This document shows, piece after piece, positions 2,844 through 60,635 of a stretch of DNA of 64,000 nucleotides. Below the pieces are notes generated by a model, which saw only the letters and a list, made by a program, of their open reading frames with translations, was not told the DNA's origin and ran no database searches. The stretch covers positions 1-64,000 of the forward strand of contig JAADVB010000066.1 of NCBI GenBank assembly GCA_023334545.1. The letters are read 5' to 3'. The position numbers were made by a program, and so were the translations under genes. The DNA comes from Salisapilia sapeloensis CBS 127946. Its lineage: Eukaryota; Protista; Oomycota. Within the stretch, counting starts at the first letter, position 1, and each line of letters begins with the position of its first letter.

Positions 2844-3947
2844 ATGAAGCTCTCTACTATGCTCACCTTTGGTGTCGGTGCCCTCGCCCTCGCACTGCCT
2901 GTGGATGCCAGATCCGCTCGACGCGAGCCGGGATACTGTAAGAACACCAAAGACTGCACGGAGGAATCGCCAGACTACACGTGCGTCTCCGTCCAGACCA
3001 CACGCGCCGGCGTGGAAGACGTCAAGCAGTGCTTGCCGTCCAAGACGCCGGGTGACATCTGCTCTGGTCAGCAGCCGGGCCTCTGCCCTATGTTCTCCAC
3101 TTGGAAGAGCGAGTACAAGTCCATTAGCAGCGTTTGCGCGTTCATTATCCCGGACGCAGACTGCATCCCTGAGGGTGAGACTGGCGATTCATCCAAGAAA
3201 AACCAGGTCGCTTGCCTTAACGTCACGGAGTCCTCTTCGGACTCTGGTTCGGACGACCCCGAGAAGATCGGTGTCATCTACGGATGCGTCGACTTTGACG
3301 GCCAAACGCTGCTTTACGAGAAGGACTCGGACAACATGGACCTCGTGAAGAAGTTCAACTACACTGCTATTATCAAGGACAACTGTGTGAACCCGGACAA
3401 CGAAGATGGCAGTGACATCGTTTGCTCTGGCCGCGGTACGTGTGCCCCGCAGACTGCTGGCCAGATGAACTACGAGTGCGATTGCAACGTCGGCTACAAC
3501 GGCACGTACTGCGAAGGCATCGAGTCGAACAAGTGCACGACCAAGGTGCAGTGCCAAGCTGGTGTGTGCAACCTCAAGACGCAGGAGTGTGAATGCCCCA
3601 AGGGCACCACCGGTGACCAGTGCGCCGAGTGCGACCCCGAATATAAGGACGCTTGCAACGGCCACGGAACGTGCAAGAAGGGAAACCCGGCTGTCGGCAT
3701 GGGCAATGGCAGTGGCAGCACTAGTGGCAGCACGATCAAGGCTCCTGCCGAGGTTGGTGACTCGGACAAGAACATGTGCGAGTGTGAAGAAGGGTACGCT
3801 GGTGCCCAATGTGACCGCAAGGTGAAGAAGCCGAAGAGCTCGAGTGACGGGGATGCCGACGAGGGCTCCGGTTCTGACGGTGCTGCCACCGTCCTCGCAT
3901 CGTCCTTTGCTGCTGTGCTCTCGGCTGCTGCGCTTATCATGGCTTAA
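2844..3947 (+). CDS. Secreted Cys-rich EGF-like domain protein, probably GPI-anchored (367 aa)
   Basis: Signal peptide MKLSTMLTFGVGALALALPVDA; EGF-like units (CSGRGTC...YECDCNVGYNGTYC, CECEEGYAGAQC); Ser/Gly linker followed by a hydrophobic C-terminal tail typical of a GPI signal. Confidence 0.85.
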   Translation: MKLSTMLTFGVGALALALPVDARSARREPGYCKNTKDCTEESPDYTCVSVQTTRAGVEDVKQCLPSKTPGDICSGQQPGLCPMFSTWKSEYKSISSVCAFIIPDADCIPEGETGDSSKKNQVACLNVTESSSDSGSDDPEKIGVIYGCVDFDGQTLLYEKDSDNMDLVKKFNYTAIIKDNCVNPDNEDGSDIVCSGRGTCAPQTAGQMNYECDCNVGYNGTYCEGIESNKCTTKVQCQAGVCNLKTQECECPKGTTGDQCAECDPEYKDACNGHGTCKKGNPAVGMGNGSGSTSGSTIKAPAEVGDSDKNMCECEEGYAGAQCDRKVKKPKSSSDGDADEGSGSDGAATVLASSFAAVLSAAALIMA

Positions 3948-5434: not shown

Positions 5435-7278
5435 ATGGTACTTGCTCTCGTTTTATTTTCTCTGATTTGTACCTAACTTGTATGGAAAGTCTCAAGAAAG
5501 TCAGAACGTCTCTGGATACTGGGCAATCCGCCGTCCAAATGTCAACAAGGTATGTACCTGATTTCAGATATATATGGCACGTGTGACCAACGATACAATG
5601 CAGGGGCTCGCCTTTTCCGAGGAAGAGCGTCAGAAACTTGGTCTCCGTGGTCTCGTCCCGGACGCCGTGACGTCCATCGAGTTGGAAGCCGAGCGTGCGC
5701 TCATCCAGCTTCGTCAAAAGTCCTCTCCACTGGAAAAGTACCTCTTCCTCCAATCCATGCAGGTACTTAATCCGTCTCCAGTCGATCTCTCTCCTTATTT
5801 AACCTCTCATCTAGGACACGAACGAAGATGTGTACTACCGTATGCTCATCGACCACACGCACGAGCTCATGCCGCTCGTTTATACCCCGACGGTCGGCGA
5901 GGCGTGCCAAAAGTTCAGCCACATCTTCCGTCAAACGCCTCGTGGCCTGTACGTGTCCATCAAGGACAAGGGTCACATTGAAGAGATCCTAGACGCTTGG
6001 CCAGAGAAGGACATTCGCGCTATTGTCTTCACGGACGGTGAGCGTATCCTCGGTCTCGGTGACCTCGGTGTCAACGGTCTCGGTATTCCCATCGGTAAGC
6101 TCGCGCTTTACACTGCTTGTGCCGGTGTCCCGCCATCCATGTGTCTCCCTGTCGTCCTCGACGTCGGTACGAACAACCAGGGGAACTTGGACGACAAGTT
6201 CTACATGGGTCTTCGTCAGAAGCGTGTGCGTGGTCAAGAGTTTGAGGATCTCGTGGACGAATTCATGAACGCCGCTCGTAACAAGTACGGCCAGAACGTC
6301 CTGCTCCAGTTCGAGGACTTTGGTAATTCGACGGCTTTCCACCTCCTACGCAAGTATGAGGACACCCACGCCTGCTTTAATGATGACATCCAAGGCACTG
6401 CTTCTGTCGTCGTTGGCGGTCTCTTGGCGTCCTCCCCCTTGACTGGCAAGTCCATGGCCGACCACACGTTCCTCTTCCTTGGCGCAGGTGAAGCCGGTAC
6501 CGGTATTGCCGACCTCATCGCACGCTCCGTCGCGAAGGAGACGGGCAAGTCGTTGGAAGAAGCTCGTAAGCGCATCTTCCTCGTCGACTCTCGTGGTCTC
6601 GTCGTGAACTCCCGTAAGGAGAGTCTGCAGCACCACAAGCTCTTGTACGCACACGACGCTCCGTCCTGTCCGGACTTGATGACGTCCATTGAGCAAGTAA
6701 AGCCGACTGCTCTCATCGGTGTCTGCACGATCCCCAAGACGTTCAACAAGGAAGTGTGTGAGAAGATGTGTGAGCTTAACGAGAACCCGATCATCTTCGC
6801 TTTAAGTAACCCGACGTCGCAAGCCGAGTGCACCGCCGAAGAGGCATACAAGTTCACTAATGGCAAGTGTGTCTTCGCTTCCGGCAGTCCATTCGACCCG
6901 GTCGAGTTTAATGGAAAGAAGTATGTGCCTGGCCAAGGCAACAACTCTTACATCTTCCCTGGTGTCGGCCTCGCCTGCGTTGCCGTCGGCTTGACCCACG
7001 TCGGTGACGAGATCATGCTCATCGCTGCCGAGGCATTGGCAAGCATCGTGACCCAGAAGGACCTGGACACTGGATGCGTCTACCCTCCTCTCTCGGATAT
7101 CCGTAACGTCTCCCTCGACATTGCCGTCAAGGTCGCGGAATACGTACGTATCTCCTTGTTCTCTTGTTTCTATATGATACTTATAAGTGTACTCTAGGGC
7201 TATGAACGTGGATATGCGACGGTGGAACGCCCGTCAGACCTCCGAAAGTACTTGAGTGACTTCATGTACAACCCATAA
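5435..7278 (+). CDS. NAD(P)-dependent malic enzyme; introns 5438-5489, 5550-5603, 5763-5814 and ~7144-7198
   Basis: Spliced N-terminus MSQESQNVSGYWAIRRPNVNK|GLAFSEEERQKLGLRGL; motifs VYTPTVGEAC, TDGERILGLGDLG, QFEDF, FNDDIQGT, FLGAGEAG, LSNPT, GQGNNSYIFPG. Confidence 0.95.
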
Positions 7279-54963: not shown

Positions 54964-55019
54964 CTTAGACAACACAAGAACAAATTATAAACTACGTGTT
55001 GCAAAATCCTTCTACTTGC

Positions 55020-55598
55020 TTACTTCTTGTCCGTATCTACTTTCCAATCGCCACCTTTTGTTCCTCCAGTTTTTTCCAGTACTCGAGTCGATTCAATGAC
55101 GATATCTTTCGACAGTGCTTTACACATGTCATAAACACACAAAGCCGCAGTAGATGCACCCGTCAATGCCTCCATCTCGACACCCGTTTTATGAGTCGTA
55201 CGCACAATACAGTCGATCACAAGAGATCCTTGATCATTTGATGGCAGATGGATATCAATTTTACAATCCTCAATCGGAACTGGATGGCAAAATGGGATCA
55301 AGCTACTAGTCTGTTTCGCAGCTTGGACACCCGCGACAATTGCAGTCGCTACAACTGGGCCTTTCGTGCCCACGAGCTCATGGACAGAATCGGACTCGGA
55401 CTGTCTCAGCTCGGAGAGCACATTCAGAGGCAGTCGAACGATCGATTGTGCCCACGCTGATCGACGCGTACTCGGTTTCTCTCCAACATCCACCATCTGC
55501 GGTCGATTTCCATCCTCACTTACATGCGTGAAAGATGAGCTGCTTCGCCATCGAGTGCCTCGAAAGCGCTGGAGCTTCCATCGACTAATCCGGAGCAT
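55020..55598 (-). CDS. moaC: Cyclic pyranopterin monophosphate synthase MoaC (MOCS1B/CNX3-like) with a mitochondrial presequence
   Basis: 'MVDVGEK', 'AAKQTSSLIPFCHP', 'KTGVEMEALT', 'YDMCKA', 'KTGG'; Arg-rich N-terminus. Confidence 0.95.
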   Translation of the reverse strand: MLRISRWKLQRFRGTRWRSSSSFTHVSEDGNRPQMVDVGEKPSTRRSAWAQSIVRLPLNVLSELRQSESDSVHELVGTKGPVVATAIVAGVQAAKQTSSLIPFCHPVPIEDCKIDIHLPSNDQGSLVIDCIVRTTHKTGVEMEALTGASTAALCVYDMCKALSKDIVIESTRVLEKTGGTKGGDWKVDTDKK

Positions 55599-55722
55599 CG
55601 TGTCTTATCGAGTGGCATTTTGTAAATAAGAACTGACTGGTTCGTTGTATGGGTCGTGGGTGGAGCTCAGTTCGGAATTTCAGAAAGGAAGGACGTACGT
55701 CTCCCTCTTAGCACTCGACTGC

Positions 55723-58220
55723 ATGGCGACGACAACGCAATCGGATACGATGTCGACACGAACTACGAATGTCCGTATGAACAACTCGGACGGACATCAA
55801 GTGCAGCATATTCTCGGCCAATTTGATGCAAAAATAAACAAAATGATGGATTATCCGGCGAAAGACATTATCAATTCCTTGACGATGCTTGCGGAACGGC
55901 GTGAATTTGCGCCGCAGATTGTCCAGTTTCTCGAGACCAAGATCCATCGGGTACTTATATCTACTTTATGCTATCCATGTATGTCGAGGGAGTGTGTCCT
56001 AGGATGAAAAATTAGTCGACATCCAGTCATGACTTGTACTCTTTTCTTTCTCTTTAAAGATCGTGAGAAGATGAAAAGTAAGGACGGAGGAGGCGTGGAA
56101 GAATGGGAGAAGATCGGCTTGTGGACGGAAGTGCATGGCTCGAACGACCTTCAGGATAGTCGGGACTAGACATGCGGTCCCTGCACGAGACGTATAGAAA
56201 TGGCACGATACCATTCGTCCTGTCCGTGTGGACGTACGATACGGGACTCATCATGACCGATAAGCCGGTCTTCTCCCGAGACTCTACACGCATGAATCCT
56301 GTCGATACACAATAAAAAAATCGTTTCTAGTGATAGCTCTCCCCGTCGATGATGTTTTATCTAAACTGCAGTCTTTCACTAACATACATGCTTGCTCGGT
56401 TCCACGTAGGTCCTGCCGCAGTACAAGCTTCCGATCTTTTACTTGACGGACTCGATCCTCAAGAACGTACGCGACCCATATCCCAAACTCTTTACCAAGA
56501 GTATCGTCCCTCTCTATTGCAATTGTGTCCGACAGGTAGCTCTGCCTCCTTCCACCTTTTTCAGTCGTGGTTCTAAATCCTCTTTCTATTAGGTCTCTGA
56601 AAAAGATTTAAAGCGCTTTATGCATGTCTTGAATACGTGGGAATCCACGCGTATATTCCCTCCGGATGCTCTCGCGCAAATGCGTGAAGCTGCGACTCAA
56701 GCACAGCAAGACGCTGGATCGTCACGTCGATCGGCAGCCCCACGTGATCTTCCAGTTACCCAAGCACCATCTCGAGAGCAATCGAAAGACCAAGAGCTGA
56801 GATCTCTCCTTACACAGGTAAGATACAATCTCTCTTCATTATAATTTGCACTTATTAATGACATGCATAGCTACAAAACGATATGGGCATTCATCCGATG
56901 GAACACATGAGTCTGGAGGAAGTGCGGACAAACAACCCGGCGTACTATAGCCAACTCTTGGCATTCCACTCCGGTCAGCCGGTGGAACAAGTCGTTGAGC
57001 CTCCTCGTCAGGCTCCAGAACCCATTGCAGAGACTGGCGGCATTTTGGGTACGCCTCCCGGTCCGTCCCAGGCGATTAAGAGACGTCCAGCACCTCGTCG
57101 ATCATCTCCACCAAAGGATCCGAGAGCAGCCCGGAAGGCAGCGAGTGAGCCCAAGGACCGGTCGGATGCCCCTGTACGCCATGAACGTCCTTCAGACAAA
57201 AAACAAGAGAGTAGTAAATCAGGAAATGTATCGCATCTCATGGAGCTGTTAAAGAAAAAGAAGCAAACGCCAGACTCGACGCCTCCGTCGGAGCCGGAAG
57301 TCGTGACGAACGACCCGCCCCGCGCTCCGGATCCGCATGCTGTCATGTCCATTTTGCAAAAGCTGAAGGGGTTAAACCAGTCGAATGCTTCCAATATGAC
57401 TTCTGCGGCGTCGTCTTCGCCACCAACGAATGTAGATGACTCGGAATCGACAAAGATGTGGTTCAGTGATAAGATCGTAGCTCATAAAGACCGTGTTGAG
57501 TCGAACGTGCACAAGTTGTATGCTGCACTGCCTTTAGTCTGCCGTGAAAGCGGTCTGCGTTTCTCTGATCAGAAGAAGCTCGATGCGCACTTGGATTTCT
57601 TATTCCAGTACAATCGAGCGAAGAAGGAGCGAGGGCGAGGCGGCATCTCTCGTTCGTGGTATCCGGACGAAAGTCAATGGATTTCGGACGTCGTGTCGGA
57701 AAGTGTGCCGAGGGAAACCACTAGTAGTAGTGCCTTTGCCCTGAAAGAGATTGAAGAAGAGTCGAAAGAGTCTTGGGAGAATGCTCGCGTCCCAGTCGAT
57801 GAATCCGTCACTCGATGCCGTATCTGCGGGTATGTTGTCGCTACTGAAGTTTGCTGTTACAAAGTCCTAACAATTTTGTTTGTAGTGAAAACTTTGCCAA
57901 GAGCTGGGACGAAGAAGAGGAAGATTGGATGTACACGAATGCTGTCGTCGGTACGATCCATGATCCGAAGACTGGCAACCCGATGGAACAGACGATCTTC
58001 CACAAGTACTGTCACGACGCAGTGATCTCTAATTCGAAACGATTGACGCCAGATCTACTCATCCCGTTGTCTCCGAGAAAGTCGGACGAAAAGGCAAACA
58101 AGAGATCTTTCGAGGTATGTAGCATTTGTATTGTTATGATATATCTGATACTAATCGGAGTGGATACGATAGGCGGATGTTGACAGTGATGAAGATGTGA
58201 AACGTGCTCGGACGAATTAG
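55723..58220 (+). CDS. PCF11: Cleavage/polyadenylation and termination factor PCF11, multi-exon (intron 1 at 55951-56409)
   Basis: CID 'KDIINSLTMLA…|…KLPIFYLTDSILKNV'; C-terminal zinc-finger region 'CRESGLRF…HLDF…SRSWY' and 'CRICG|ENF…DWMYTNAV…HKYC'. Confidence 0.9.
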
Positions 58221-58450
58221 AAAGCGAATGATTTGTACAGTATGCCAGAGACCGCATGGCACGGGATATGGAAAATGACATGGAGTTCTTTTTTTGCGTT
58301 CCGTGTCCATCTTACACCATTGGCTCCTCCAAATCGCTTCGACTTAATCTATCACGCATTGCTATCCATTTACATCTTCCTCTTTCGACATGACACGGAT
58401 AGAAGGACAGGAAGATGATCAATAAAAATACTTTGACGATCAATATCGCG

Positions 58451-60635
58451 TTAAATTTCGTTCTCATCATAAAAGTTCGAGCATAATGCATCCGGTAATA
58501 TTGTGGTGGAAAACTCCATCGAGTAGTAACATCGTTCGTGAAACTCAGTGCTATCATCCAACTCGCAATTTGTCATTAAACGGGTTTTCCTTCCACTTTC
58601 CTCGTACAGTTGGAGCAGGGAAATGGAGTCTAGTAGCCACCTAGGGACTGAATGAACTGTCGGTGAAGCGGAGTAGTGAGCAGTGAGCAAGTGTTTGGCT
58701 CTCTGTAAAGTTGTCAAACCTAAAGACTCCACTTCCAACTTTTGCTCTTTGCCATCTTCGATTAATCCCTTCCTTTCCTCAGGTAGCGAAATTAAGGCAC
58801 ATATTGCTGATGCGCTCACCTCCAATAAAACAGCATGATCTGCATCGTTGCAAATGGAGAATAGTACTAATTGACCATCGATCTTTAATACTTCTTGCCG
58901 ATTTGCCCTTGACCGAGATGTGACTGCAATACAATCACATAGCGCAATTATACTTTCCAGAACGATTCTGGAGTTGTCATCACGGAGCTTTTTCTTCGCT
59001 ACTGATAGAGCATAGACGATGGCTGCAAGTCCATTCTGAGCAGCTATCCTCGTCTTATTCAACGGGTTACCATGACAGATTGCTGCTAGTGCCAATGCGG
59101 ATGATTTGACGGCACACGAGTCGGATACTTCCACAAGCGTCTTCAAAAGGTTGGACATTCCTTCTCCATATCCGATTGATAATTGGTTGACGGAAGTATA
59201 TGCAAGATTTCCCAGTGCGCCTGCACAAACTGAAATAAGTGGTCCAACTTTATCGATTCGACCATCCTGTAGCGCCATAGCGAGTGCACCGTCACCCTCG
59301 GCAGCCATGACTTCACTGTGGTTGACAACATGATTAAACGTCAAGTTACACAGCAACTTGGCTGCTTCTGTTCGTACTCTGATATCACCACTTTTACGAA
59401 CGAAGTCTACGCATGTTGGAAGGAAATGAAAGTTGGCAATTTGAGATCGCACAATTTCAGAATCTATTGAATACCAGTAAATAAACAATTACACCTTGCA
59501 TATATACCAGAAATTAAATGTACCGTGTGAAAGGTTCACAAGAGCTGAAAGCGCATAAAGCTGAATGTCGTATCTGGATGGTATGAGTGGATCCGAAGTT
59601 TCAAGTGGATTCGTTTGCTGGGAATTCGATACAGGCTGGAGAAGTGCTATTAGAAACCTCACAGCACTCTTTGCAGACAGCACTCGTTTATTTACGGAAG
59701 ACATGGCTAATGCTGCACATAAGCGAGATGCTTCAACGATCACGCGAGAGTTTGACGCTGACTCGAGTATCTGGACAAGCGGTGCAGCAACTCCACTTCC
59801 TATAATCTCTTCTCTTGTCTTAACTGCTGTTGCTAATGAGATTGGCTTATCTTCCAATCGAACATTGTACATTGCATCTTGTTCCTTTTGAATCCGCTTC
59901 AAGTCATATATAGCTATATGGGTTAGTGCTATTAACACTGACCCGGATACCAAGCTGCTCATATTCTCTCGTAAAAGATGAGCGAGGAATGGAAGGACAC
60001 CGGCCTTGACCACTTGTGGTGCCATGTAAGCTGGTAGTAGAGCCAAGCTTTGAGCAAATTTTGCAAAAGCTTCATGATCGAGTGGTATGTGCGTCGGACA
60101 TTGATTATCTGGCAGTGTTGCAGAGCCCTGACATATATTTGTCTGCAGAAAAGAAAGCTGCCACAGTCTTTGAGCCTCCTTATCATGCTTCTCTTGCTTT
60201 AGTTCATCGTGAAGCTCTTTCATCAGCGTCTCCCAATGTCTACGTTCCTTCGTGACAGAATGTTGCTCACTGGCGATTAATTGGCGCTTGGTTGCTTCTA
60301 AGAGTTTTGCCTGACTGTCAGCTTGCACCTGAAGTCTATCCATTTGGCAAGAACAATCGCATTAGATTGAAAAAAATAACATATCTTTATAATTTTATGT
60401 CATGCTCGACCTACTCGTGAATTTGCGATTCCAAGTCTCTAATTTGATGCAGTAGCTTTTGCTCGATTACATCCTTTTCCTGCTGGAGTTGTAGCACTTG
60501 TCTTGACAGCTCTAGTTCTTTGGGCGTTGGTACGTCCGGGTATGTCTACACGTAATTGCTGGTTACCATTAAATTCAACTTTAAATGACATGTAAGTCTA
60601 GAAGTTAATCACTCTACCGCTTCTTCAGGTCTCAT
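58451..60635 (-). CDS. Coiled-coil plus armadillo-repeat protein, multi-exon
   Basis: Exons MRPEEA|TYPDVPTPKEL…HE|LQVQAD…; ARM repeats ('EAAKLLCNLTFNH', 'VCAGALGNLA', 'ALALAAICHGN'); intron near 59490-59525. Confidence 0.75.

Follow-up and report, generated by a model that had tools for sequence, protein, structure and literature searches.

The plus strand of the window (the whole 64-kb stretch of DNA that was analysed) contains a PCF11 gene interrupted by five introns, and all coordinates given here refer to this strand unless stated otherwise. Exon 1 spans 55637–55950, with a 5′ UTR from ~55637 and an ATG at 55723, and its coding part (55723–55950) comprises 76 codons for the N-terminal half of the CID and ends with ATC CAT CGG in phase 0. 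This exon is covered by an RNA contig (55637–55952), and its translation aligned with exon 1 of other oomycete PCF11 genes at 75–79% identity. Exon 2 (56410–56535), which was present in a spliced RNA contig, encodes VLPQYKLPIFYLTDSILKNV, the core of the N-terminal CID that characterises a PCF11 orthologue, and contains the motif KLPIFYLTDSILKNV. The exon pieces matched the Pfam CID at E = 5.8e-4 (the 42-aa piece of exon 2) and 0.036, both under the cut-off because the CID is split across three exons, and PF04818 is present in full-length orthologues that share 55% identity with the query from exon 4 across its length. Further downstream, the gene encodes a C-terminal PCF11-type zinc finger (zf_PCFS4, 37.1 bits against a cut-off of 27) and the Clp1-interaction domain (Pcf11 Clp1-ID, marginal with 21 bits against a cut-off of 24) that are characteristic of PCF11 orthologues, and one of the matches, P0044, is annotated at its source as subunit Pcf11. 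The terminal poly(A) signal and the end of the mRNA lie at 58420–58437, where contig 4 of run X1 ends at 58437 and the signal CAATAAAAA is located 17 nt upstream of this real end of the mRNA. A related sequence, CAATAAATACGAC, is conserved in the 3′ UTRs of Phytophthora.

A long first intron with a weak donor splits the CID

The CID is split after codon 76, between CID helices, by intron 1 (55951–56409), a phase 0 intron of the GT..AG type running from GTACTT to CACGTAG. Because RNA contigs from three runs (X1, X5, and X7) have a joint skipping exactly these 459 nt, the intron is real, and the 55950/56410 junction was confirmed in both of the organisms from which RNA was available. The original prediction had called this intron long for the window, which was borne out, as introns 2–5 of PCF11 are 57, 53, 56, and 58 nt and intron 1 is eight times their length (459 versus 53–58 nt). 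The donor, GTACTT (55951–55956), is weak, with no G at +5. The branch-point consensus CTAAC (56379–56383) is located 27 nt before the acceptor, and CTGAT or CTGAC was found at the matching distance from the acceptor in four orthologues. The normal branch and true acceptor predicted beyond the AATAAA are both present. When intron 1 is retained, the reading frame stays open for another 18 codons before a TAG, so that the product would stop 18 codons past exon 1 with half a CID. A protein search with the product of exon 1 plus this read-through gave no match from the organism itself. Since the intron lies within the CID-coding region, as does the first intron of vertebrate PCF11, a short isoform would encode a part of the CID.

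A long intron was found at the same PCF11 codon boundary in eight other taxa of Peronosporales and Pythiales. Its length is 201–436 nt in the six annotated taxa, compared with 51–107 nt for the credible other introns, and is >296 nt and >415 nt in L001 and L007, respectively. The orthologous intron is only 85 nt in one taxon (L011) and is absent in Aphanomyces. The intron-1 donor has no +5G in any of the nine taxa, whereas 16 of the 19 other PCF11 introns have it; the Fisher test gave p = 7e-5 on 0/8 versus 16/19, for a simple criterion picked after inspection of the data and for taxa that are not independent. The donor positions +4 to +6 vary among the taxa (ATG, AAT, CAT, CTT, and CAT), and because the donor is weak in all nine despite this variation, selection on inefficiency can be argued. 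In the weakness of its 5′ splice site and in its size relative to the genome, intron 1 resembles the first intron of vertebrate PCF11. Beyond the splice and branch sites, no alignable core was detected in the orthologous introns, where the shared features are limited to a tract rich in CT and a loosely defined GA-rich motif (in Phytophthora, AGAGATGGAGAG), and no conservation of the intron sequence was found across genera. The earlier expectation of conservation therefore holds for the long intron at the same codon boundary and fails for the hexamer, which is missing in six other taxa.

Among the public gene models for oomycete PCF11, several have no CID or are divided into two, and the break is at intron 1 in both of the split loci. 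Intron 1 is probably also behind the CID-less models.

Intron 1 is retained in much of the PCF11 RNA

The RNA contigs came from two related organisms, represented by runs X1–X4 and X5–X7, the latter from other studies on a relative that is ~95% identical. The depth is one mean per contig, and the method cautions against ranking gene parts by it; with this reservation, the depths in X1 were 169.1 for the exon 1 contig, 120.6 for the unspliced contig (55923–56438), 63.1 for the spliced junction, and 89.5 for exons 2–6. The corresponding depths of exon 1, intron, junction, and downstream exons in X5 were 12.7, 7.18, 3.7, and 6.4. The RNA containing intron 1 was therefore nearly twice the spliced junction in both organisms (120.6 versus 63.1 and 7.18 versus 3.7). 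Introns 2–5 left no trace in the RNA, and the depth bins of X1 fitted zero retention exactly. Of the three runs covering exon 1, X1 and X5 showed it at about twice the depth of the exons downstream, and no such excess was seen in X7. The depth in X5 declines generally from 5′ to 3′ (12.7, then 6.4–7.9, 4.8, and ~3), which could account for a part of the exon 1 excess. When the junction depth was subtracted from the exon 1 depth, the remainder was close to the intron depth in X1 and X5, and therefore most of the intron RNA is joined to exon 1.

Within the intron, the coverage in X5, X6, and X7 drops after ~56270–56300, just upstream of the intronic copy of CAATAAAAA. The X5 intron contig breaks at 56299, and the depth falls from 7.18 to ~2.1–3.4 beyond this point, as derived by arithmetic. 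The one discrete end, in X5 at ~56299–56301, which lies upstream of the hexamer and runs into adapter and not into A's, could be a PCR duplicate. The unspliced contig of X1 spans intron 1 completely and extends into exon 2. None of the RNA contigs showed a poly(A) junction in intron 1.

A candidate poly(A) signal in intron 1

The AATAAA of the original prediction was confirmed at 56311–56316. It is a part of CAATAAAAAA (56310–56319), a putative poly(A) signal of the intron that would direct cleavage to ~56325–56335 and that shares the 9-mer CAATAAAAA with the 3′ end of the gene. The 9-mer has only two plus-strand copies in the 64-kb window, one in intron 1 and the other at the PCF11 3′ end. 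Such an occurrence was estimated to have a chance of ~0.003–0.01, judged post hoc, and a lone AATAAA is expected ~0.15–0.2 times by chance in an intron of such length. AATAAA was not enriched downstream of the long ORFs in the window, being found in 6/28 cases and in 6/28 of the antisense control. When the introns orthologous to intron 1 in P. nicotianae, P. sojae, P. ramorum, Plasmopara, Py. oligandrum, and Py. insidiosum were scanned for 11 A-rich hexamers, none was found. With AATAAA-like hexamers missing in these six, conservation of a poly(A) signal within the intron is not supported. AATAAA was also found in the AT-rich partial orthologous intron of L007. Similarly, the search for k-mers common to the intron and the 3′ UTR of each orthologue returned nothing poly(A)-like outside the species of the window. 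Thus, an evolutionarily conserved intronic poly(A) signal of the vertebrate type was not found in these oomycetes. Of the premature-polyadenylation switch put forward in the original prediction, the abundant intron-1 RNA that does not code for PCF11 is supported, and a conserved intronic signal is not. A poly(A) site within the intron would be consistent with the depth drop after ~56300 and with CAATAAAAA being identical to the terminal signal, and a vertebrate-like early poly(A) site in intron 1 is a plausible candidate at roughly even odds.

The same RNA could also arise by passive inefficiency, where an over-long intron is merely spliced slowly, and the unspliced full-length by-products are cleared by NMD or stay in the nucleus, with neither a poly(A) site nor feedback. 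The passage of the X1 unspliced contig through the intron into exon 2, the 5′-to-3′ depth gradient of X5, and the missing canonical poly(A) hexamers in the orthologous introns would all agree with such passive splicing. However, a donor that is weak in 9/9 taxa though its +4 to +6 positions vary, a depth drop at ~56300 inside the intron in three runs, and an intronic 9-mer identical to the terminal signal speak against it, and we consider it rather unlikely.

A predicted long-range stem bounds the intron core

Zipper stems are known from yeast in the long introns of organisms whose introns are otherwise short. A 19-bp long-range stem was detected in intron 1 by RNAfold and self-match, with its 5′ arm at 56104–56122 and its 3′ arm at 56260–56278, looping out 137 nt, and the arms have no substitutions in the relative. 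None of 150 dinucleotide shuffles reached 19 bp in RNAfold. Weaker long-range stems of 12 bp (p ~0.05) and 13 bp (p ~0.03) were found in the orthologues of P. sojae and Pythium insidiosum, respectively; overall, the stem is above chance in only 3/7 orthologues and not above chance in the four other taxa. As in zipper stems, the predicted pairing would probably exclude the central part of an intron that is unusually long. Unlike them, it leaves the structural donor-to-branch distance no shorter than in shuffles, and this distance is still ~255 nt with the stem closed. The fold of the whole intron was not significant (z = -1.3 to -1.8), and the inner fold is not preserved in the relative, where substitutions disrupt four of its pairs without compensation.

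The contigs of the relative mainly cover the core bounded by this stem. Those of X6 and X7 (56108–56270 and 56115–56294) cover the core but leave out the initial 155 nt of intron 1, a pattern more in keeping with a stable fragment than with RNA linked to exon 1. The modelled stem may thus protect a core decay fragment. Taken further, a stem-closed RNA of ~56104–56300, left over from splicing or from the decay of unspliced RNA, might resist exonucleases and accumulate, either as an inert intermediate or as a functional RNA. The discrete X5 end at ~56299–56301, 20 nt beyond the 3′ arm, and the significance of the stem and its unchanged state in the relative would be expected from such an RNA. 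Its weight is reduced by the X1 and X5 depths that tie most of the intron RNA to exon 1, by the low depths of the X6 and X7 contigs (only 2.5–3.1), by the uncompensated loss of inner-fold pairs, and by the lack of cross-genus sequence conservation. In addition, an Rfam scan of 55000–59000 at E ≤ 10 gave chance matches only, including Whalefall-1, and ARAGORN found no tRNA within or near intron 1. A minus-strand box C/D snoRNA with ATGATGA at 56248–56254 and CTGA ~95 nt further on was considered and rejected, as it has no terminal stem and its box C candidate, the sole RUGAUGA and located on the minus strand, is destroyed by substitutions of the relative at 56249–56251. The architecture, conservation, and Rfam match of an intron-hosted snoRNA were thus not found, and a stable intron-derived RNA as the source of the signal is improbable.

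Coding potential of the intron was also rejected, as its four ORFs on both strands had no Pfam match, and the substitutions in the relative showed no 3-nt periodicity. Of the further copies expected for a transposon or MITE insertion, none was found in the 64-kb window or at 11 loci, and a 20-nt stem arm scanned against metagenomes matched five contigs, unrelated and GC-rich, by chance over only 20–23 nt.

The original prediction had also pointed to a splice of exon 1 to an internal acceptor ending at 56059. The strong, acceptor-like pyrimidine tract ending in AAAG (56040–56059) and the following ATC GTG AGA AGA TGA are indeed present in the sequence, and they would allow a hypothetical poison micro-exon of 18 nt (ATC GTG AGA AGA TGA AAA, 56060–56077) with an in-frame TGA, joined to exon 2 through the near-consensus donor-like GTAAGG (56078–56083) or serving as a terminal exon. 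The relative has the same sequence in this segment, but at 95% identity this is not significant. Against such an exon, no contig uses the 55950–56060 junction, and four runs showing all five canonical joints have none that enters at 56060 or leaves at 56077, although contigs drop rare isoforms and these missing joints are weak evidence. There is also no good branch-point motif upstream of 56059 and no comparable flanked exon evident in the orthologues, which makes the micro-exon very improbable. An origin of the intron signal from genomic DNA or nascent pre-mRNA is hardly credible, although the RNA nature of the runs is a guess and their records give no library type, given that the contigs are spliced at all five introns, that introns 2–5 have zero residual depth in X1 whereas intron 1 is deeper than the downstream exons, and that the same pattern recurs in the second organism in other studies.

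Discussion

These findings suggested a reading to which we assign about an even chance: intron 1 is a conserved intron whose splicing is slow by design, so that much of the gene's transcript output ends up in RNAs unable to make PCF11. The intron is long, its donor is weak and conserved, and it is kept in most of the RNA, and therefore it probably acts as a dosage valve for PCF11. The weak and distant splice-site pair would make its splicing slow, and we infer that most of the intron-bearing RNAs would end inside the intron near CAATAAAAA at 56310, short of exon 2. How much full-length mRNA is made would then depend on whether splicing outpaces cleavage/polyadenylation or decay. By analogy with PAS1 of vertebrate PCF11, more PCF11 or a higher 3′-processing activity would favour the short form and create a negative feedback.

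In vertebrates, PCF11 is a limiting and dosage-sensitive component of cleavage/polyadenylation and termination, and it is kept scarce by a poly(A) site in intron 1. The autoregulation of PCF11 by polyadenylation at PAS1 in intron 1 (Kamieniarz-Gdula et al, 2019, PMC6458999; Wang et al, 2019, PMC6428223) and the attenuation of yeast PCF11 by Nrd1-Nab3 (Creamer et al, 2011, PMC3197677) agree with the precedents named in the original prediction. Like the vertebrate gene, the oomycete gene has its first intron inside the CID with a short RNA for a partial CID, a weak donor, an intron large relative to the genome with AATAAA inside, and a large share of transcripts that never become full-length mRNA. 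The two differ in the size of the intron (459 nt versus ~3 kb) and in the signal, which is a single hexamer here and is not conserved in other oomycete genera, compared with the conserved tandem AATAAA of vertebrates. Furthermore, vertebrate PAS1 has mapped poly(A) ends, PCF11 binding, and depletion data, whereas the oomycete case is built on sequence and RNA contigs. The yeast system is alike in that PCF11 expression is held down by termination that comes too early, close to the 5′ end of the gene, but there the 5′ UTR is the site of action, the Nrd1 pathway used is a non-poly(A) one, and no intron takes part.

SR proteins are known to control their own levels through unproductive splicing. 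Among other processing factors, CstF-77 and RBBP6 have autoregulatory intronic poly(A) sites or retained introns (cited in PMC6428223). In these cases as in oomycete PCF11, the pre-mRNA of a processing factor contains a suboptimal intron whose splicing, cleavage, or retention sets, or in the oomycete would set, the dosage, whereas the dependence of oomycete intron 1 on a trans-factor is only hypothetical.

That a weak-donor first intron splitting the CID, together with premature polyadenylation, controls PCF11 dosage in both oomycetes and vertebrates is a tentative proposition. A stramenopile PCF11 with a long, weak-donored first intron inside the CID, kept in most of the steady-state transcripts, would suggest that this homeostatic control is much older, or arises more repeatably, than has been known. 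If true, the shared control of PCF11 would be either ancestral to eukaryotes, provided that the positions of the introns are homologous, or a remarkable case of convergence, and the self-limitation of PCF11 would be a near-universal design principle of the 3′-end machinery. The 459-nt intron would also offer a compact and genetically tractable oomycete system for the competition between splicing and polyadenylation.

PCF11 gene and its long first intron

PCF11 is encoded on the plus strand by six exons (55723–55950, 56410–56535, 56593–56817, 56871–57829, 57886–58114, and 58173–58220) giving a protein of 604 aa. The exon pieces matched the Pfam CID, Pcf11 Clp1-interaction domain and zf_PCFS4, and oomycete CID-domain/Pcf11 proteins were the best relatives, with 55% identity over the exon-4 query. 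Intron 1 (55951–56409, plus strand; GTACTT...CACGTAG, phase 0) lies inside the CID, the N-terminal domain, between ..ETKIHR and VLPQYKLPIFYLTDSILKNV, and the remaining introns are of 57, 53, 56, and 58 nt. The original prediction, which had read this intron as a premature-polyadenylation switch, was exact in placing a 459-nt intron that splits the CID, and the motifs noted there are present: a pyrimidine tract with AAAG ending at 56059 (internal acceptor), the in-frame ATC GTG AGA AGA TGA following it, AATAAA at 56311–56316 and CTAAC at 56379–56383. The GC content of the interior (56060–56300) is exon-like (0.51–0.54) and that of the flanks is 0.38–0.40. No Rfam family or tRNA was found in intron 1, its ORFs on both strands had no Pfam match, and the 64-kb window holds no further copy of it.

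The moaC gene (minus strand, 55020–55598) and PCF11 are transcribed divergently (55003–55637), and their RNA contigs (55604 and 55637) are separated by just ~32 nt, implying that the bidirectional promoter is extremely compact. Tudor, MoaC, and PCF11 follow one another in the same order in Phytophthora nicotianae, P. ramorum, and Plasmopara (loci L002, L010, and L005), and the opposite-strand ARM-repeat gene downstream of PCF11 in Pythium, Aphanomyces, and the Logan contig L001. A tRNA-Lys (CTT) gene is located at 303–375 on the minus strand.

Splicing and retention of intron 1

RNA evidence came from assembled contigs of four runs, with depth given as one mean per contig. The X1 contigs were 100% identical to the window, and X5, X6, and X7, from three other studies, represent a relative ~95% identical to it; because the contigs were spliced at GT..AG, these runs are evidently RNA. 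All five introns were removed in X1 and X5 contigs and the 55950/56410 joint was found in X1, X5, and X7, thus confirming the gene model and the predicted intron 1 junction. Depths in X1 were 169.1 for exon 1, 120.6 for unspliced intron 1 (contig 55923–56438), 63.1 for the spliced junction, and 89.5 for exons 2–6; the corresponding values in X5 were 12.7, 7.18 (contig 55923–56299), 3.7, and 6.4 (downstream exons). In both runs exon 1 depth was close to the sum of junction and intron, and therefore most intron 1 RNA is still attached to exon 1; RNA unspliced at intron 1 makes up roughly two thirds of all RNA that contains exon 1. When junction depth was subtracted from that of the downstream exons, only ~26 (X1) and 2.7 (X5) were left for RNA carrying intron 1 into exon 2. 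X5 depth declines generally 5′-to-3′ along PCF11, and the exon 1 excess is absent in X7. Plain retention of intron 1 with no regulatory role is a rather unlikely reading.

Stem and coverage drop inside intron 1

The 19-bp long-range stem formed by 56104–56122 and 56260–56278 (plus strand) is the only statistically solid feature within intron 1, as this length was reached in 0 of 150 dinucleotide shuffles (mean 9.2 bp). The relative has no substitution in either arm, whereas 4 of 10 loop substitutions break predicted inner pairs with no compensation, and conservation of a folded RNA thus stops at the stem. Stems were above chance in three of the seven orthologous introns, and a structure-shortened donor-to-branch-point distance was no better than in shuffles; the idea of a zipper stem was borne out only partly. 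A minus-strand box C candidate in intron 1 was rejected, being destroyed in the relative.

In X5 the intron contig breaks off at 56299, with the rest of intron 1 at ~2.1–3.4 by arithmetic on depth bins, and the intron contigs of X6 and X7 end at 56270 and 56294, respectively, X6 coverage being zero over 56271–56385. This fall from ~56270–56300 is where coverage would fade ahead of a predicted cleavage at ~56325–56335. In the relative's runs, PCF11 coverage also fades ~190 nt short of the 3′ end in X1. The X5 contig runs at 56299–56301 into Illumina adapter letters (AGAGATCGGAAG) and not a poly(A) run, and therefore several identical fragments end there, as expected of PCR duplicates or of an RNA with a discrete end. 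In X6 and X7 the contigs start at 56108 and 56115, cover the stem-bounded core, and leave the first 155 nt of intron 1 uncovered. The stem may protect a decay fragment, which would explain these core-only contigs and the X5 end ~20 nt beyond the 3′ arm; that such a stable fragment is the main signal is improbable.

Use of the internal acceptor at 56059 noted in the original prediction, or of a poison exon, is very improbable; no joint into this site was listed in the RNA contigs. An artefact as the source of intron 1 RNA is hardly credible because X1 bins over introns 2–5 equal exon depth multiplied by exonic fraction exactly, with zero residue, which ruled out contamination by DNA or nascent RNA.

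Candidate intronic poly(A) signal

AATAAA is expected by chance ~0.15–0.2 times per intron of this kind and after long ORFs in the window it was no more frequent than in the antisense control (6/28 in each); by itself it is weak evidence of a poly(A) site. The 9-mer CAATAAAAA occurs on the plus strand of the window only at 56310 and 58420, the latter 17 nt before the PCF11 mRNA contig end (58437), and a third copy, on the minus strand, follows a long ORF by 181 nt. The motif being common to intron 1 and the PCF11 3′ end, the intronic copy appears usable as a poly(A) signal of the terminal kind. The terminal signal is kept in Phytophthora PCF11 3′ UTRs as CAATAAATACGAC, and AAUAAA and AAAAUA predominate among the upstream hexamers of P. 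infestans (PMC4360255).

In Phytophthora and Plasmopara, conserved 3′ UTR blocks were also seen ~40 nt past the PCF11 stop (L002 about 6355–6380, L005, L009, and L010). The first, (G/A)ATGTAA(T/C)GAT(T/A)AATGAGT, includes a UGUA and is similar to a PUF or CFIm site; the second is CTGCTTCAG.TCT(C)GTCT; they are possible post-transcriptional control elements, with only a loose counterpart in the window (TTGTACAGTATG at about 58233). A weak SNORD59-like match at 58430–58476, between the PCF11 and ARM-repeat genes where these converge, is almost certainly chance (17.3 bits, E = 9.3, far under the gathering score).

Comparison of intron 1 across oomycetes

Intron 1 was compared using public gene models and our own mapping, and in the taxa having it the position is exactly the codon boundary seen in the window. 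Its length is 249 nt in P. nicotianae, 309 nt in P. sojae, 231 nt in P. ramorum, 234 nt in Plasmopara halstedii, 201 nt in Pythium oligandrum, 436 nt in Pythium insidiosum, more than 296 nt in L001 (GC-rich), more than 415 nt in L007 (AT-rich Logan contig), and 85 nt in L011; it is absent from Aphanomyces invadans. Other credible PCF11 introns in six annotated models are of 51–107 nt. The intron 1 donors are GTAATG, GTAAAT, GTACAT, GTACTT, and GTTCAT, with G at +5 in 0/9 versus 16/19 other introns of these genes (Fisher p = 7e-5 for 0/8 versus 16/19, a criterion chosen post hoc among taxa of shared ancestry). Between genera the intron is unalignable except for splice and branch sites, a CT-rich tract, and a loose GA-rich motif. 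AATAAA and ten related hexamers occur in 0/6 complete orthologous introns, and judged by sequence a recognisable poly(A) signal in intron 1 is not conserved. Therefore, of the conservation looked for, position, excess length, and weak donor are kept and the AATAAA is not.

In L011 (4334–4418; Logan ERR1992530), the 85-nt intron stands at the CID position and intron 2 is missing; its donor GTTCAT also lacks +5G despite the short intron, making this locus a natural comparison for whether length matters.

In many public oomycete PCF11 models the CID is missing, or an exon-1 mini-protein is separated from the rest (P0002, P0011, P0013, P0016, and P0022; P0049 with P0010; L011 4001–6308). Both split loci are broken at the long first intron, which thus probably defeats gene predictors and may also explain the CID-less models. 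The P. sojae model P0036 (L009) has two additional apparent introns, of 330 nt (1743–2072) and 360 nt (3261–3620), both with a GTGCGT donor and neither present in any other taxon, so these are probably annotation artefacts removing low-complexity coding sequence.

Relation to known PCF11 control

Vertebrate PCF11 self-limits through PAS1, a conserved tandem AATAAA in a 3-kb first intron (PMC6458999). In mouse, the 5′ splice site of intron 1 is very weak, the intron is larger than average, and the CID is encoded only in part by the short isoform; through these features the intronic site senses how active intronic polyadenylation is (PMC6428223). In yeast, Nrd1 attenuates PCF11 by binding in the 5′ region of the gene (PMC3197677). 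The oomycete intron resembles that of vertebrates in its place inside the CID, weak donor, relative size, and much non-productive RNA, whereas PAS1 is conserved and the oomycete intron carries no conserved intronic signal. Our literature search found no paper tying PCF11 regulation to oomycetes.

We give about an even chance to the reading in which intron 1 is a conserved, slow-splicing dosage valve and, in S. sapeloensis, part of the transcripts is lost to a probable poly(A) site within it, at CAATAAAAA. The slow splicing of the first intron would set PCF11 dosage, and the intronic site would divert its share of PCF11 transcripts. PCF11 intron 1 belongs with a known type, the unproductive processing of a 3′-end factor's own first intron, and early polyadenylation with feedback, if borne out by 3′-end data, would raise its importance.
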